Counted from the first letter of the stretch, positions 54,274 to 64,000 are shown. The stretch is DNA of 64,000 nt from Klebsormidium nitens (GCA_000708835.1 DF237090.1:27753-91752), one strand, 5' to 3'. Notes: a model not told the origin generated them from the sequence alone. Numbers and translations: made by a program.

Positions 54274-57155
54274 TCAACCAGGCGATATTGCGAAGTACTT
54301 GTAGCCTGTCCGTTCTAGGTCTCTTAGACGACATTCGAGTCGCTTCGCTTCGACCTCGACGATCTTGCGATCACTTCGCGTCAGCAGCAACGGCGTGAGC
54401 AACGTTCGCGAACCTTCGATTCGCGAGAACGTCCACGTCATGTACTTCGGGCCCCCTTTCGTCCCTTCCGAATCTGCCGAGGCGCTCTGAACGTTTTCCT
54501 CCCCTCGTCTCGGTGTTTCTTCCGACAGCGCTTCTCTACCGTTCGTTTGTGACAAATTTGCACAGGCTTCCAGCCCTCCCTCCTCGACACCCGAGCAACC
54601 AGGCCCACTCTGAATAAAGTCTCTGACTCTCAACCGGAGCGCTTCTTCCCAGATCGGCTTTGCAGCCAACAGCAGCTTCTCAGCTGCGGCGGGCTGAAAA
54701 GGGATCTTCCCCGGTTCCCTTTCGTCTGCAGCCCCAGTCTCGTGAAAGTCCGATCCCCCAACTTTGAGTAATTTGTACAGGTCCGCTAAGGGGCCGTAGG
54801 CCGTGATCTTGGTGGAGTCCTGGTACACCTCGATCCCGTCGAGACCTGCAGTCAGAGACGAAATGAACGGTGGTACAGGCTCGTAGAAAATAAGCCCTTG
54901 GCTTTTTTCATACTGTTTAAGGCTCCACGGCTTGTGAACGGTTCTACGAAAAAGGTGAGAAGGAGACAGCAAGTTGTTCCGAGGCGCCGACCATCGTGCC
55001 GGCTGAATCCATACCCCAAAGCAAGGGGCCCTGGATTGTAGAGAAAGGCAAAGCACGTTGACATTTGTACGCTCTTGAATCGCTTGTCCAATGATGTTCC
55101 ATTCAAGCGAAGCCACCCATTCATGTTTGTTCTTTTCTCTGTATTAAATGATCTCCATCCTCTGGACTGGAGTATGAATAAACGACAAAAACCCAGACAT
55201 TTGACCATAATGTATGTCGAATGAGACGTTGGCCGAATCTCCTCCTCGTTTCAGAAGGAGAATTTCCTTCTCGTTTCAGAAGGCGGATCCGCAAAGAATA
55301 ATCTCATCCCCCTCACCGGCTGCGGCTAACCGCCCAACAATCGCCATGGTGTCTTTCCGGATGGACCACGGGTGCGCCAGCACAGACACGCCGCCACAGC
55401 GCCGGATGAGCGGAATGGCCTCAAGAGCGGGGATCTCGCAACCCCTGCAACCAACGAGCTTCTCCGTTAGAAAGTGACGGTCTGCTGTAACAAAGAGGTT
55501 GACGCTGGCAAGGACCTCTTGCTGTAGCGTTAGGAACCGGGTACAGATTGGCTACAAGGTCAGAAACGACGAGAAAGGCCCCGTTAATCTTCAACCGCTC
55601 ACGGAAAATGATCCTCGAAAAGCTGGGTGCCACGGTCAGATACGAGGGTCCTGGGCTCAGTACGAAGTTCCTATCAGAGAGTGATGGGGCGAAAGGGAAT
55701 TCTTTGAATCTCAGATCAAGTTTAACAATCGCACCAGCTTCAACTAGAAAGGAAGAGTCTGAATTGGTTCTCCCATGAGACATCGAAATTGTCCCCTTAA
55801 AAATTACGCGAAGGAAAGCGATTCTAATGGGGAGTAAGTCCAGACTACTGTGCACCCGATCTCAACGAATCGAATCTCGACAACCATTGGACAAGGATAT
55901 CAGCCATCCCTCGACGATGTTGCTCCAGTAAAAGCAGTGCTATTCCGAACCTTTGATGACTAAATGGTCACCCTACCTGGCAAAGGCAGGCCCGTCATCC
56001 CTCAGGTACAGCCCAAACGCGTCCTTCTCCGAAGCCACATGCCCCGCCTCAAGCAACGCCCGCGCTACATGTGGCCGCCCGGGAGCCACCCCCGGGCCCG
56101 CAATCTCAACTACCCGAGAGAGCTTGATAGGCTTCCCAAGCGCCCGGAGCTTGTCCACCATGCACTTTGCCCGCCCAAGGCGTCCAGTACGAATCCTCGA
56201 GAGCGCCCGGTGGAAGTCCCCGGGGTTGCTGGGGCCTCCAGGGGCAAAGTAGGCCAGGATGTGGATGACTTCGCCCTGGAGGGGGTCGGAGGGCTTGCTC
56301 GCAAATGCGGAGATCTCGACGCCAGGGATGACCCTGGGGGAAAAGAGGATAAGTAGGGGGTGCATGAGAACAATGAACTCTGGCTTACCTGCCAGTATTT
56401 CAAAAAGTCCTTTGAGTGATGCACCTGAAAGCAATGCTTCGCAGTCTTCTTCCTCATGTGCTTTGGAAAAGGGGCAATCATTGTGGAGATTACAAAAGCT
56501 CAGGGTGGACCTGAGATGCTCCCAGATTGAGCAGGGGGGGATCAAAAATGGCATTCGATGCATTATGTGCCCCCACAGGTAGAAGTATGAACTATAGCCA
56601 GGGCAAATACAGTTCCGAGAAATTCTGAAATGTACCATCCATCGCAAAGTCAACATCAGTTGGTAGGAGCGGTGGTGTGGGGTAGTGGCACTTCAAGGAG
56701 CGCATCTCCACGCACCTGACGCCAAGCTGCGCTCCTGCTTCCGCCGCCTCCTCAACCCCCGCCATGGTGTCATGATCTGTGAGCGCCATGATCCTGACGC
56801 CATTCGCTGCAGCCTTCCTCACCAGCTCTGTTGGCGAGAGCCGGCCGTCGCTGCATGTGCTGTGCATATGCAAGTCCACAAGACCATGATCTGGCCGCAC
56901 GCCTTTCTGCGTTTTGAGATTAATTGGAGAAAATGTGGTGAAAGAATGGAGTCTCCCCGCTGTTGAGGAACCTTTTGATTCTCCAGGAGAGGGGCTGACA
57001 CCGTCCCCATCGCTACCGCTGCTGTCAGAATCTGAAAGGGTACAGCCTATTCCAAGGCCGTACGCGGCCAAGATCCTTTCTTCTGCGGCCTCTGGATCCA
57101 CGTGACTACTTTTCTTTCTGCAACTCGACTTTTTACTTTTACTCCGCCTGGCCAT
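54274..57155 (-). CDS. PHP-domain phosphoesterase of the YciV/TrpH (3',5'-nucleoside bisphosphate phosphatase-like) family
   Basis: Exons 56716-57155, 55977-56333, 55317-55444 and 54274-54845. All PHP metal ligands are present: DLHMHSTCSDG, ALTDHDT, GVEIS, HILAY, GRPHVARAL, VLAHP, GIEVY, GGSDFH. The N-terminus is basic (MARRSKSKKSSCRKK). Confidence 0.93.
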
Positions 57156-57496
57156 CTTGCCCGGATTGCTGGCCTGCCTACATGAATAGCGTTCACCTCG
57201 CAGCTGTGCAGGCGTCACTCCGTCCTGCTCATTAAGACGCCTTCCAAAGCTTGATTCGCAGGAGCGCTGATCCTGATTCTGACGACCACATTCAATTTCT
57301 AGCATTTTGATTTTCCAGCATTTTGAGCTAGTGCTTTATAGGGTTTCTTTCTCGAAATTAGGGTTCAACTTCAAGCACCTTAAGCTGCAGAATTTTTGTC
57401 TTCAAAGGTTGGAAAGAAAACATTCATCCTCCGTGCTGATCAAGCTCGCCAAGGAGCAGAGGTTGATGCTGAGCAGGGGGAGTTGTACTTGTGAGG
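57156..57496. promoter_or_regulatory. Compact bidirectional promoter region between the PHP gene and MRS2
   Basis: Only 341 bp separate the two divergent ATGs. The AT-rich core at ~57300-57420 contains telo-like TAGGGTT motifs. Confidence 0.5.
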
Positions 57497-60400
57497 ATGA
57501 GGGCTCTCCAGGGCGTTGGTGCACATGCGGTGCGCATGCGCAGGCTGTGGAGCTATCAGGCAATGCAGATGCTGCGGCCGCCGCTTTTAGCGGCAGATCT
57601 TTCCCAAAACCTTCTCCTCTCCAATCAATTTCTGGCTGCCCATTGCGCAAGCTTACTTTCTCAATTCCAGTCAGCATCTTTTGCAATGCACCAACGCCCC
57701 CAGATTCAGCTGCCTCAACCATCATCATCTGGCAGCATTGCACACCACTTTCATCGAAATCTCTGGAGACCAACCATGTTGCTTAGCATGGAGAACCGGG
57801 CCACCTTCAGCACAGAGTCTGAGACTGAGGCTGAGATTCGGAAGGAGGCGCTGCGCCCATTCGCGCAGAATCGGCAACACTCAGAAAAGGGCAGCCTGGA
57901 GGGGCCAGCCCCAAAGTACAAGGTGTGGAAGGTGACACGAGATGGGCGCAAGACCGAGGAGGAGATTCCACAGGAAGCACTGGTGGGCCCACACCCTGAT
58001 TCTGCATTAGGTGACCTCATTTTTAATCAAAACTGAAGATCTGATCAGGTGACAATTGACCGTATAGCAATTCACAAACTTTCATCAAACAGATGGGATA
58101 AACACAAATCCCTTAAATGGAGCACTTTTGAAGCATTGAAAACTCCTTCAGATTGAACCCAGCTCATTGAATGAAGCTTACATATTAGTGGTGCATCTCC
58201 TCAGTTTGAATCAGACAGTGGTACACTCATGGATCCAATTGGAGATCAACTGCCATGGCCCAGGTCTTTGGTTAGGTCATCGAGCGAGCAATAATCAGGA
58301 TCTAAGCCCTCACTTTAATGGCTGTTTGAGCAATAGTGAGAGGCCTTGTTTTTCTGCCAGGGGCTTCCTCCCAGGGACCTGGACATCCTGAGCTCTGTTA
58401 CGTTCACCCCCCACAGGGCCCAGATCGGAGCCAGGGGTGGGAAAATGCTAGTCCGAATGGAAAATCTGCGCGCTCTCATTGCCCCTGAGGAAGTCATCTT
58501 CTTTGGCGGGCGCTTCGCCAGGTGAGGGGTCAAGAAAAGTATCATCTCCTCTTTTGCATGGACAATTGTAAGAAGACAAGTTGGACCTTGAATCTGCTGT
58601 GCTATCTCATTGCCTGTGGCTAAGAGTCAGAATCAGGTGCACATTGACCCAGGACCCTGTTGTTTCTGCCAGTGTTCAGTTCTCTGACCCCTCTAACCAA
58701 TCAAACTCGATAGGGCTTTTTCTCGATACAACAGAGAGCCCAACTCACATGTTTGACACGTCTTTGACAGGAGTAGGACTTGACTTCCTCCACCGAGTCT
58801 TTCTATAGAATTTGGTCCCAGAAAGTACCTAAAAGTATTGACAGTTCCCCGATCGCTTTCGCAACTTTAAGCTCGTATTTCCTTGCTCCCTTGTCTGGGC
58901 TTCTCTGTGGTAATGTCATATCATATCTTGACTTTTTGCCTCCAGTGATTGAAGGTCAGGCAAAAATTCCGTCTCCTTCCTTCTGCGGTCCGACCCCTGC
59001 CCATTCCTCCATGCCCATTGTCGAATTCGTTTGTATCTGTTTTGTCCGACTTGTCCTCTCGTTTTGTCCCACATTAAGGACCTTTGCCCCCTTTCCATCA
59101 ATTTAACGCCCCCTTCCCCGCCAGATCAGCCGCCACCTGTGCGGAGCTGGCCGCCTCGTTTCTGGCGCAGCACCCGCAAGGAGGCAGCCAGTTCCCGTTC
59201 GAGCTGCGCATGCTGGAGTGCATCCTGCGCGAGACGCGCACCTACTTTGTGCACAAGATCGCCAAGCTCAAGATGGTCGCAGAGGCCATGCTCGAGGACC
59301 TCGCCTCCGACATCTCCACCGCGGGGTGAGCTTCGCTGCAAAACGACAGGCTTTGAAAACGATTCAGGAGCTGCCTTCCGCCATGAGAAAATGTAGAAGT
59401 TTCCCTGGACGACTCACAATCGAAAAGGCGGTCATAATTGGCACAAGCAAGAGGTCAGAAGATGACAAAAGTGCTTCTTTTGGACAACAAACTTCGACGG
59501 TTCCCATAAATTGAGAGGTCAGACGGCGCAGTTACACTCGACTTAATCGCACTCTTGACGCCTTACTTACCAGGAGTGAACTGATAATTGCAAGCTCTCG
59601 ATAGATGGACTAAAGGAGGATTCTCCGCATCACTCTCTAAGGAAATGAATCGCGTACGCAAGGTTGAGAGCTCAGGGGCTTTCGGTGAAGGTTTCACCTG
59701 CTTAAATCTATGGTCCCCCTTCCTCCCTCAGGCTTCACCTGCGGCTGCTGCCCCTGAAGCGGACAATGACCGAGGTTGACAATGACGTCAGGGAGACGTA
59801 CGAGGCGCTGACGGAGGTGATCGAGAACGACACGCTGTTGATGGACCTGTGCCGGACGGTGGACGAAGGCTCGGAAGGGGCAGAAAGAGCAGGTAATGAG
59901 GTGAGGGAGGGTTCCATGCGAATGGCTGACGGCCTGCGTTATGTGTTTGAAACGAAGCTGGCGCTGTGGCTGCTTGATCTTTTGTCAGACAGCCTCAGAT
60001 GATAGTTCGAAAAGCCTGACGTCTTTCTGCGTGCCCTACTCTTCTTCTTCAAGTTCCTGAGCCTTGGATACCTCTTGTACCATATACCAAGCCTCGAAGA
60101 AGCTTTTTGCGTACGTAGTGGTTGTTGACTGTCGCAAGTAGGGTCGAAAGCGACAGAGCTGTCATGTGACTTGGTTACTCTCACAATCTGCATGCGCGCC
60201 TCCCTCGCTCCTGCTGAGTCGAAACAGTACAAAAGGTTGCTTCGTATTGCTTTCCTTCACATCCCCACCCCATTTCCGTTCTCTGGTGGGCGGCATCGCA
60301 ACCTGTTTTGGACCCATCAATTTCCGGCCGAAGCACCGTAGCGAACGCTCGAGATCGGAAGTAATGCTTCTCCTGCTGGTCGGAACCTTCGTCCGTCTGC

Positions 60401-62813
60401 TCTTGCCAGGCGGGTGGGTCGGGGCGCAAGCGCGCGGTGGTGGCGATGCTGCTGAGCTACCAGCGCGAGGTGCAGGACGTGGGCAGCGCGCTCAAGGAGC
60501 TGCGCGAGAACATGGACTCCGCGCAGGCCGTGTGGGAGCTGGGGCTGGACAGCACGCGCAACCGCATCATCAAAATGAACCTCTACATCGGCATGGCCAC
60601 GCTCTCGGCCTCCTGGTGCGCGACTGATTTTACTCGCAGCTGCCTTTTAGCTACTCCCTCGGTTTATAGCTGTTCTTGCCGTTGGAAAGCCTGGCAATAG
60701 CCTGACACCATTTTCATCTCTCCTCAACCCTGCCTTATGCAGGCCCTGCTTTGCAACTCCTCCTGCTTTTGGTGATGAAAAGATGTTCTCGAGGCTCGGT
60801 TTGACGACTTTGATCGAGGTCGGGTGGTGCTGAGAGGTAGAGCAAACACGCGCTGCTTGTTAAGTGACTTTTACAAAAAGACTCCCGAGTACGAGGCATG
60901 GTCCCTTCAGGCGTCATTTTGTCGGAGGGGTAAGTTTGTGATGCTTTTGTTGGATGGTTCACAAACCCGTACCTTGAACCAACAATTTGTACTCCGGATT
61001 CACAAGGCAGAATCTCTCCGGTTGAGAATACCCAGACGAGAGAATCCATGGCAGGACAGGCGTTATCCTTCTTTGAGCTACATCCGGTACACTTCGTATG
61101 TTTCTAACGACCACGGTTCAGCATGCCCCGAATGACGGACAGCTTGATCGAAGCCCACTGGAACTGCACCTGACCCGGAATGGGCTTTGCATCACCGAGA
61201 TAAGCCCTCGAACACGCCCAGAACGGCTATGTCGCAAACTTGTTGAGAAGCATCCTCCACTGCCAATCGCGATCATCTTTTCCACTTGCTGTCAACAGCG
61301 CGCAGTTGCCGGCCGCGTTTTTCGGCATGAACGTCCCGAGCGGGCTGGAGGAGGCGGGCGGCCTCTTCCCGTACATCACCGGCGCGGCATGCGCGGCGTC
61401 GCTCGGCCTCTTCGGGTACTGCCTCTACTGGTACAAGTTCCGGCCGCAGAGGAAGCACCAGCGGAGGCTGCAGGCAAGCCGCTGACTGTGTACTTTAGCG
61501 ATCTACATTCAGGAAACCAATGGACCCTTGTGATGAAGCTTCGAGTTTGTGATCAGATTCCAGAAGACTGGGCTGGTTTCTGTCTCGCAGGGGCTGACAC
61601 TTTGATGGTGCGTGTCTGTGAGTGTAAAATGGAGGCTTAATGAATAGAGTCCGAGGGCCCACCCACACATTCAGGCAGCATTCTGTGGGCTGTGGCCCTG
61701 TATAGTATTGCGGGCATGCGTTGTTGATCTTTTGTAAGATGAGCGATGTTTTGCCGGCTCTCGATTCAACTCGTTCGGGTCGTTTACAATGCCAGGGTTT
61801 CTTTTTGACTAGTACCTCCGACGCAATCCCAACGCACTGACCACTTTCGAAACTCGACAAGGAGCACAAGGCTGCTACACAATGGCAGCCAGCACCGCAT
61901 GCCGATGGTGGCTTGCAGCTGCGTCTGTCTGCTTGTGTGAGCTTTTGCCACGTGTCGCTCGTCAGGACATTGCGGCCCTGCGGGATCTACTGCATCACAT
62001 CGACGACCTGGATGACATCATCAAGAAGGGGATGGGCAAACGGCCGCACGTGAATGAGCAAGAGTTCACCGAGATTCTGAGGAACCACCCCGCGACCGCT
62101 CAACTGAACAAGGTACGCGCACGTTTGCCTCTGAGTTCTAGCGATCTTATCACCGATCGAGGTGGCTCGATTCAACACGAGGTTCAAGCATAGAACTTCT
62201 TCAGCGTTCTCTTTTATAATCAATCTGAGGCCGGCGCTGCACCGTTACATTGTCGAACCCTCTGTTTCGCATCCTGTTGTAAGGTGGAAGTAGCAGAGTA
62301 TATTCCCGCGGCACCTTTCAAAAAAAGGTATGGTGCGCTGCCCTTTCAAAACAAGAATGAGAGGCTTTCAGAGCGGTGGAGATAAGCGGTTCATGATACG
62401 TCTTTGTTTGCATGGCTCTTCATTGGTTCGAAGATTTTTGCACTGTCACTGGAAGCATTTTGCGTATAACTGCAGGGTTCAGTGGCGCTCATTTTCCGCA
62501 TGCTCGACCAGAATAAGAACCACTGCATCGACGTAAGCCCCGGCCGAAACCTTACCCGACGAACCGTCTGGCAATCAAGCATCTGCTCCTCCTTGCCGGT
62601 CCGGACATGCTTCGCGTTAGAATACAATCTCTTCGAGGCCTTTGCAATCCCACTGGTGGACCATTTTCTCTGTCGCAAGGGTCTTTCAAGGAACTTGGAG
62701 TTCCATATGAGAGCCGTCTCGATCCTAATCTGCATCGCTTTTTTCAGGTTGAGGAGTTCGGCAGGGCACTTGATAGCCCAACAACTTACAAGAACTCGCA
62801 ACAGATCCAATAA
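57497..62813 (+). CDS. MRS2: MRS2/CorA-family Mg2+ channel, probably mitochondrial, with a C-terminal EF-hand extension
   Basis: Exons 57497-57982, 58361-58521, 59125-59325, 59732-~59858, 60410-60615, 61299-61473, 61966-62112, 62476-62532 and 62748-62813. Motifs: GLPPRDL, FPFELRMLECIL, LLPLKR, LDSTRNRII, AFFGMN, two TM helices. The presequence ends in R-A-T-F-S-T. The exon 4/5 junction is uncertain. Confidence 0.9.
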
Positions 62814-64000
62814 CCAGATTGATAGAACCGTTGGACACGCTGGTAACCGCTGCCAAGTTCTCCAACATGTAGTAAAAGATAGTAGGCAGGTACACACTCA
62901 AACTGACTCATTAATGATAATTCACTGGCAATTGTCGCCAGAATGATGATCTCCCCGAGCAAGTGTCAAATGTTAGTAGTTGCCTTACTAGCCAGCCAAT
63001 AATAATCTTGCAAAAGTGTACATTGCCGAACTCAAGATCGGAATTTATGAGAACCGATCGGCACTTCCCATGCAACTTGAAAAGCAGAGCAGCAGCTTGC
63101 GATTTCGACATCGATAAGCTTAAGACGTTCCATGGCACGTCTACCGTATACGTTGCTCACGTCGCACATGACACTGAATGTCGGTCTTGTCAAAGACTGG
63201 TTGCATGCTCTTATGTTTGCCGCGCGCAACATTTCGGGTTAGAGAGCCGACTCCGGTCCTTGTCCCCGCGCGCATTGCTCGCGCTATTGTATTGACCATC
63301 GATCTTGTTTGATATAACTAACTATCGGGTACAGCTTGAGCGTGCAACATATATCATGTGTGACGCCCATGATTGTCGACCGTCGTCTGTTCCTACTCGT
63401 CTGAGCTGACCTCAGGTCCGGCCAACTTATACTGAGATTGAAAGGTATTTTCATAATCTCGTCCTTCGAGCTACCAACCGAGCGACGGATTGCATGCTCG
63501 AACACGCGCACATTAATTGCAACCCTCTAGAGAGAGCAATACTGTTCCTTCATCCGAAGGTGAGGAACAGAATTTGCGGCTTGCTTTTCTCCTTTGGCTA
63601 GATTTAACCCAAGTAATCGGTAGATCGCCGGTAGTTGTAACTAATTTCTGCTCGCGCACATGTGTGTCCCGGTCAAAGGAGGATATGGCCGCCCGGGGAT
63701 AGGGATACCTACCCGGTTTAGCACAGCACCAAACGGACTTTCAAGCTTCATTCAATATACCATATTGGCAAGTAGCGCCACAACCCGGGGCTCCAGTCGA
63801 AGTGAACCTCCTCATCCCGGGGGTTTGTATCCTTTCCAAGAGGTATGCACCGTACGATGAAGTGCTGAGTTTGGACAAAACTTGCCATAACACTAACCGT
63901 CCATTGGCTGGCTGCACTTATCGGACGGTTGCTGTGATCTGCAGGAATCTAGCCCAGGCACATTTGCTCGCATGCGCAGCCTGACTGCCGATCATCGGAT

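Follow-up and report, generated by a model that had tools for sequence, protein, structure and literature searches.

The window analysed here, a 64,000-nucleotide stretch of Klebsormidium nitens DNA, carries a gene of nine exons that is predicted to encode an MRS2/CorA-type magnesium channel of 555 residues. The coding sequence sums to 1,665 nt and divides into a 466-residue MRS2 core, which ends at the splice after exon 6, and an 89-residue tail contributed by exons 7 to 9. The reading frame is consistent through all exons, with boundaries set by RNA joints, and the three tail exons (61966-62112, 62476-62532 and 62748-62813) are in phase 0 throughout. The features of the locus, in window coordinates, are as follows.

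57497..57982, + strand: exon 1, 162 residues; placed from the open reading frame, the first in-frame ATG after a stop and a GT donor context
58361..58521, + strand: exon 2, with the MRS2 N-domain motif G-L-P-P-R-D-L and an R-M-E-N-L-R-A-L stretch; donor joint, alignment to P0015
59125..59325, + strand: exon 3, MRS2 N-terminal domain; RNA joints, boundaries, alignment to moss P0015
59732..59900, + strand: exon 4, MRS2 N-terminal domain; RNA joints, boundaries, alignment to moss P0015
60410..60615, + strand: exon 5, long stalk helix and start of TM1; RNA joints, match to human MRS2
61299..61473, + strand: exon 6, end of TM1, GMN, TM2 and a basic stretch ending R-R-L-Q; RNA joints 60614>61298 and 61470>61963, hydrophobic stretch
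61474..61965, + strand: GC-AG intron, 492 nt, phase 0; joint in four runs, boundary context
61966..62112, + strand: exon 7, 49 residues, conserved helix D-I-A-A-L-R-D-L-L-H-H-I-D and predicted degenerate first EF-hand; RNA joints, tail alignment, profile
62029-62064, + strand: predicted degenerate EF-hand loop within exon 7; profile match to EF-hand proteins
62476..62532, + strand: exon 8, 19 residues, entering helix and positions 1-9 of the predicted canonical loop (loop from 62506); RNA joints, alignment
62748..62813, + strand: exon 9, 21 residues and TAA, loop positions 10-12 (V-E-E, 62748-62756) and exiting helix; RNA joint 62532>62748
62814..63070, + strand: 3' untranslated region; transcript contigs end from 62995 to 63070, so the ends are approximate

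Exon 1 and its joint to exon 2 were placed by inference from the first ATG past a stop, the lengths of the transcript contigs and the presence of a moss intron at the matching place. Transcript contigs reach 576-635 nt upstream of 58400, which agrees with exon 1, and the donor joint of exon 2 (58515>59119) is present in four runs. Residues 1-40, with five basic and one acidic residue, resemble an organellar presequence, which the protein is predicted to carry. A divergent neighbour lies on the minus strand at 54274-57305, and its first exon (open reading frame 56592-57305) contains the PHP-type phosphoesterase motif H-M-H-S-x-x-S-D-G. Only ~80-190 bp separate the ATG of this neighbour from the point where the MRS2 transcript is inferred to begin, and the two genes therefore probably share a bidirectional promoter.

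The locus had been assigned to the MRS2-type channels in the first-pass annotation, and this identity is supported by the GMN motif, by the match of exon 5 to human MRS2 and by colinearity with a moss protein. The GMN triplet (61324-61332, within F-F-G-M-N at 61318-61332) aligns with the GMN of the moss, fern and Coleochaete proteins and is followed by a hydrophobic stretch with a mean Kyte-Doolittle value of 1.33 over 19 residues. TM1 is split over exons 5 and 6 and aligns with TM1 of the 540-residue moss protein P0015, inside the CorA Pfam match of that protein. Exon 5 matched human MRS2 structures at E values of 1.6e-5 to 3.2e-5, including residues 293-349 of 8ip3 at 3.2e-5. Exons 2-8 are colinear with P0015, exons 2-6 being 29-49% identical, and P0015 itself scores 85 bits against PF22099 (MRS2-like) and 33 bits against CorA in Pfam. 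Searches with single window exons against Pfam, tail exons included, returned nothing significant because the exons are too short. Exon 6 alone matched only noise among solved structures, and the ESM Atlas contained generic MRS2 clusters and one 143-residue cluster, with nothing else recovered.

Transcript evidence for the tail exons

A search for sequencing runs containing the locus gave 20 matching runs from seven studies, and the contigs of four of these (X1, X9, X10 and X12, from four studies) were examined over 58400-63900. The nature of these runs as RNA was a guess, and is accepted because contigs without seven introns can hardly be anything else; as the data are contigs, all levels are approximate.

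The joint 61470>61963 was found in all four runs from all four studies, skipping 492 bases with 4 bases of slack. The gap was assigned to a GC..AG intron at 61474-61965, given that this is the sole placement within the slack that belongs to a known splice class. The donor reads CAG|GCAAGC at 61473/61474 and the acceptor cag|GAC at 61965/61966. The proposal made from the genomic sequence, that a tail is joined to the MRS2 core through a GC-AG intron, is thus seen directly in transcript contigs, and the exon, GMN, donor and acceptor coordinates put forward with it were all exact. The two further tail introns predicted there are also used, with joints 62110>62474 and 62532>62748 present in four of four runs. 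The four upstream joints are all GT..AG, three of them found in every run and the fourth (60614>61298) in three of the four. A single contig of 1,912 nt (X10 record 7) carries every exon from 58400 to 63006 contiguously, and its internal coordinates add exactly.

Unspliced contigs were also present between 58522 and 62747, with depths of ~3-13 over the three 3' introns and 0-4 over the 5' introns. This uneven coverage may reflect the order of splicing or carry-over of DNA.

Distribution of tailed proteins and the GC-AG intron

Tail exon 1 was searched against 1.84 billion representative sequences and gave four matches, of which two (P0001 and P0004) are true relatives; the others (P0002 and P0003) were dismissed as repetitive proteins. 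Given that no full-length protein containing tail exon 1 was among these representatives, the public Klebsormidium nitens gene model probably lacks the tail. P0001, a 74-residue unspliced Logan fragment, derives from this strain or one very close to it and is identical to tail exon 1. It differs from the window by small indels just upstream and downstream of that exon, suggesting that public data include another strain or allele of this species. P0004 is an open reading frame from a Coleochaete scutata transcript in which GMN, TM2 and the tail follow in the same order, with 51% identity over tail exon 1. Within residues 127-183 of this Trinity-assembled frame, the EF-hand match ends after loop position 9, at the conserved site of the last intron. 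The transcript model therefore probably retains that intron, and its last ~48 residues are probably not real protein.

A word search from P0004 led to a protein of the fern Adiantum nelumboides (P0005), and a search from the fern protein led in turn to Physcomitrium patens (two paralogues), Taxus chinensis, Ginkgo and four JGI/Logan clusters (P0006, P0007, P0010 and P0011). The full-length moss forms are XP_024372147.1 (540 residues) and XP_024372148.1, the latter being UniRef A0A2K1KWY6 (isoform X2), and the second moss paralogue, XP_024388534.1, falls within the P0007 cluster. No angiosperm protein was found at E <= 1e-5 from the fern query among proteins of up to 455 residues, tail-only searches over proteins of 143-455 residues gave nothing new, and a metagenome scan with alignment A3 matched 567 patterns, none of which was confirmed. 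On the sequences recovered, MRS2 with a predicted EF-hand tail is a clade-wide form across streptophyte algae, moss, fern and gymnosperms. The rarity implied by the first-pass annotation does not hold, as the same architecture recurs in public protein sets throughout these groups.

Three introns of the tail region occupy identical sites in the window, fern (L001) and moss (L002) genes: one where TM2 meets the tail, one ahead of the helix that leads into the second hand and one following loop position 9. The donor of the junction intron is GT in both fern and moss, against GC in Klebsormidium. Since the tail and its intron positions are common to moss and fern, the fusion arose before the lineage of the alga parted from that of land plants, and the GC donor is a local peculiarity. 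In the fern locus (L001, 10001-21041), the public 260-residue model is truncated at its N-terminus and begins at the equivalent of window exon 4, and the tail of the Adiantum nelumboides gene holds a 9-kb intron.

Two readings of the locus give the GC-AG intron a different role. It had been suggested that the weak GC donor may produce isoforms with and without the sensor, in which case the donor would be a regulated switch with which cells set the ratio of subunits. Retention of intron 61474-61965 would give a tail-less channel of 469 residues, as the frame then stops at TGA 61483-61485, three codons (A-S-R) past the splice. GC donors are, as general knowledge, often tied to alternative splicing, and low-depth unspliced contigs do span the boundary between exon 6 and the intron (X1 record 4, 61445-61992; depth 7.8 versus 58.8 spliced). 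However, the ratio of unspliced to spliced contig depth for the GC-AG intron was 0.13 in X1, 0.24 in X9 and ~0.3 in X10, similar to the two neighbouring GT-AG introns (0.16-0.27) as far as coarse depths from four runs allow, and the homologous intron carries a GT donor in fern and moss. A regulated switch is improbable on these figures, and the GC donor is the species-specific form of an old constitutive intron. The tail exons might otherwise constitute a separate small gene, since an ATG at 61882, in frame with tail exon 1, opens a frame of 103 codons with a hydrophobic N-terminus and the intron is covered by low-depth contigs; the join to MRS2 would then be an artefact of assembly or read-through. 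This is difficult to reconcile with a precise GC..AG splice present at the highest depth in four runs of four studies, with the continuity from TM2 to tail in the Coleochaete transcript and in the moss, fern and Taxus gene models, or with the conserved position of the junction intron. For the major product a separate gene is largely refuted, and the idea as a whole retains very little probability. The open reading frame itself (61882-62193) starts within the GC-AG intron, runs into tail exon 1 and is covered only by low-depth unspliced contigs; if an internal start site were used, an independent EF-hand protein could result.

EF-hand character of the tail

The tail had been described as a pair of EF-hands, one canonical and one degenerate, and both a profile built from homologous tails and borderline Pfam matches on the homologues support this description. 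The canonical loop reads D-Q-N-K-N-H-C-I-D / V-E-E followed by F, providing D1, N3, N5, I8, D9 and E12, and is interrupted after position 9 by the last intron. The degenerate loop, GMGKRPHVNEQE followed by F, preserves just the hydrophobic position 8 and the E at its end; its identification from the genomic sequence was well founded, as it aligns with a true EF-hand loop in Arabidopsis CML18. When the window tail was aligned with eight homologous tails, one hand was degenerate in every species.

All eight species or fragments whose sequence extends into the canonical loop have D at position 1 and N/D at positions 3 and 5, and position 12 is E or D wherever present. The single D occurs in P0010, a JGI fragment (loop residues 177-189), where Asp replaces Glu; in other EF-hands, Asp at this position shifts preference toward the smaller Mg2+. 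Position 6, usually G, is H in Klebsormidium, and position 9 is K in moss. Four homologues match a PROSITE-type EF-hand pattern applied as a regular expression, and the window loop fits it by eye.

The profile (A4) comprised ten rows, with window exons 7 and 8 entered separately, and was searched against solved structures. Its best match was CML18 (E 2.6e-7), and EF-hand proteins made up 60 of the 60 matches listed, among them calmodulin, NCS-1, centrin, troponin C and MICU1/2. A profile of only two tail sequences gave weak EF-hand matches alone. Pfam scores were marginal, with EF-hand_8 at 28.1 bits on moss P0009 (cut-off 28) and EF-hand_6 at 25.2 bits on P0011 (cut-off 25) just reaching the threshold, and scores on P0004, P0005, P0015 and P0030 falling under it. 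AlphaFold models of the fern and P0010 tails, built from shallow alignments, had pLDDT values of 60.7 and 72 and placed the loop in a low-confidence helix. Searches with models of homologous tails in Foldseek and VIA-align returned generic helical matches and nothing specific, with the citrin EF-hand domain as the sole EF-hand match, and a weak one.

Proposed gating role and comparison with known systems

The explanation that best accounts for the locus as a whole, with a probability of roughly 0.6, is a streptophyte MRS2 whose 89-residue tail, consisting of a helix, a degenerate EF-hand and a canonical EF-hand, would render gating responsive to ions. CorA and MRS2 proteins have their N- and C-termini on one side of the membrane, that of the large N-terminal domain. 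This would place the five tails of a pentamer at its matrix (or stromal) mouth, next to the N-terminal regulatory domains. A divalent cation, most likely Ca2+, would bind in the canonical loop. As the first tail helix continues directly from TM2, binding would be expected to shift TM2 and the inner gate, or alternatively to alter contacts with the N-terminal domains. Entry of Mg2+ would in this manner follow the organellar level of Ca2+ or Mg2+.

The tail may instead be EF-hand-shaped without sensing anything, acting as a static module for structure, assembly or the docking of partners in the manner of pseudo-EF-hands and leaving gating independent of ions. The clear degeneracy of one hand in every species, the marginal Pfam scores, structure models that form no canonical loop and the replacement of glycine at loop position 6 in several members would all fit such a module. 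However, the second loop retains oxygen-donating residues at positions 1, 3, 5 and 12 in alga, gymnosperm and the groups between, and the non-ligand positions around them vary, which is the pattern expected under selection for ion binding. A non-sensing module is considered rather unlikely, and the sensor reading of the tail is given somewhat better than even odds.

Human MRS2 and yeast Mrs2p are not known to carry an EF-hand after TM2, nor are the MRS2/MGT proteins of Arabidopsis known to have an EF-hand tail. The window protein otherwise resembles human mitochondrial MRS2 (PDB 8ip3, 8tul and 8ts1) and yeast Mrs2p in its GMN motif, two C-terminal membrane helices and long stalk helix. Human MRS2 is reported to be regulated by Ca2+, and its regulation by divalent cations is attributed to sites within the pore and the N-terminal domain (bioRxiv 10.1101/2023.08.12.553106). 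The Arabidopsis MRS2/MGT family (clades I and II of PMC8733655) belongs to the same superfamily and shares the GMN channel core. A third clade of plant MRS2/MGT proteins contains algae, bryophytes and lycophytes and no angiosperms, in a study that nowhere mentions an EF-hand (PMC8733655). Among proteins of up to 455 residues, the tailed relatives recovered came solely from streptophyte algae, moss, fern and gymnosperms, and we infer that the tailed proteins correspond to this Clade III.

The closest known counterpart is the moss 'magnesium transporter MRS2-I isoform X1' (XP_024372147.1), a computer-predicted model whose name omits the EF-hand. It shares with the window protein the TM2-to-tail junction, the tail motifs and the three intron positions of the tail, and the moss proteins carry MRS2-like and CorA Pfam matches and borderline EF-hand ones. 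Unlike the window gene, the moss gene has a GT donor at the junction intron and an extra intron in tail exon 1, and its loop follows the D-x-D-x-D-G scheme and carries K at position 9. No functional study of the tailed moss MRS2 was found. EF-hand modules also act on organellar transport in MICU1/MICU2 of the calcium uniporter and in the aspartate/glutamate carrier citrin/aralar, where they make the transport step dependent on Ca2+. MICU1/2 are separate subunits on the intermembrane-space side, whereas the window tail is fused to the channel; in citrin, the hands form the N-terminal part of a protein with a carrier fold, whereas the window protein has a single predicted pair after the last helix of a predicted pentameric channel.

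Proteins of this kind are already present in public databases, named plainly as magnesium transporters, and a full-text literature search found no paper describing an EF-hand on an MRS2/CorA protein. The EF-hand-tailed MRS2 is a variant of a known channel for which no published description was found, and the names of the clade's public gene models hide the extra domain. MRS2 is the main route of magnesium into mitochondria and its regulation is actively debated. If the sensor reading is true, this would be, as far as was found, the first case of an MRS2/CorA channel fused to an ion-sensor domain of its own. A small module fused after the pore helices provides a clean way to ask whether calcium controls magnesium entry, and the same protein occurs in Physcomitrium patens, a moss whose genes are routinely targeted. 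It may be proposed, tentatively and at somewhat less than even odds, that non-flowering streptophytes keep an organellar MRS2 in which an EF-hand sensor gates Mg2+ by Ca2+, and that this form was lost in flowering plants.
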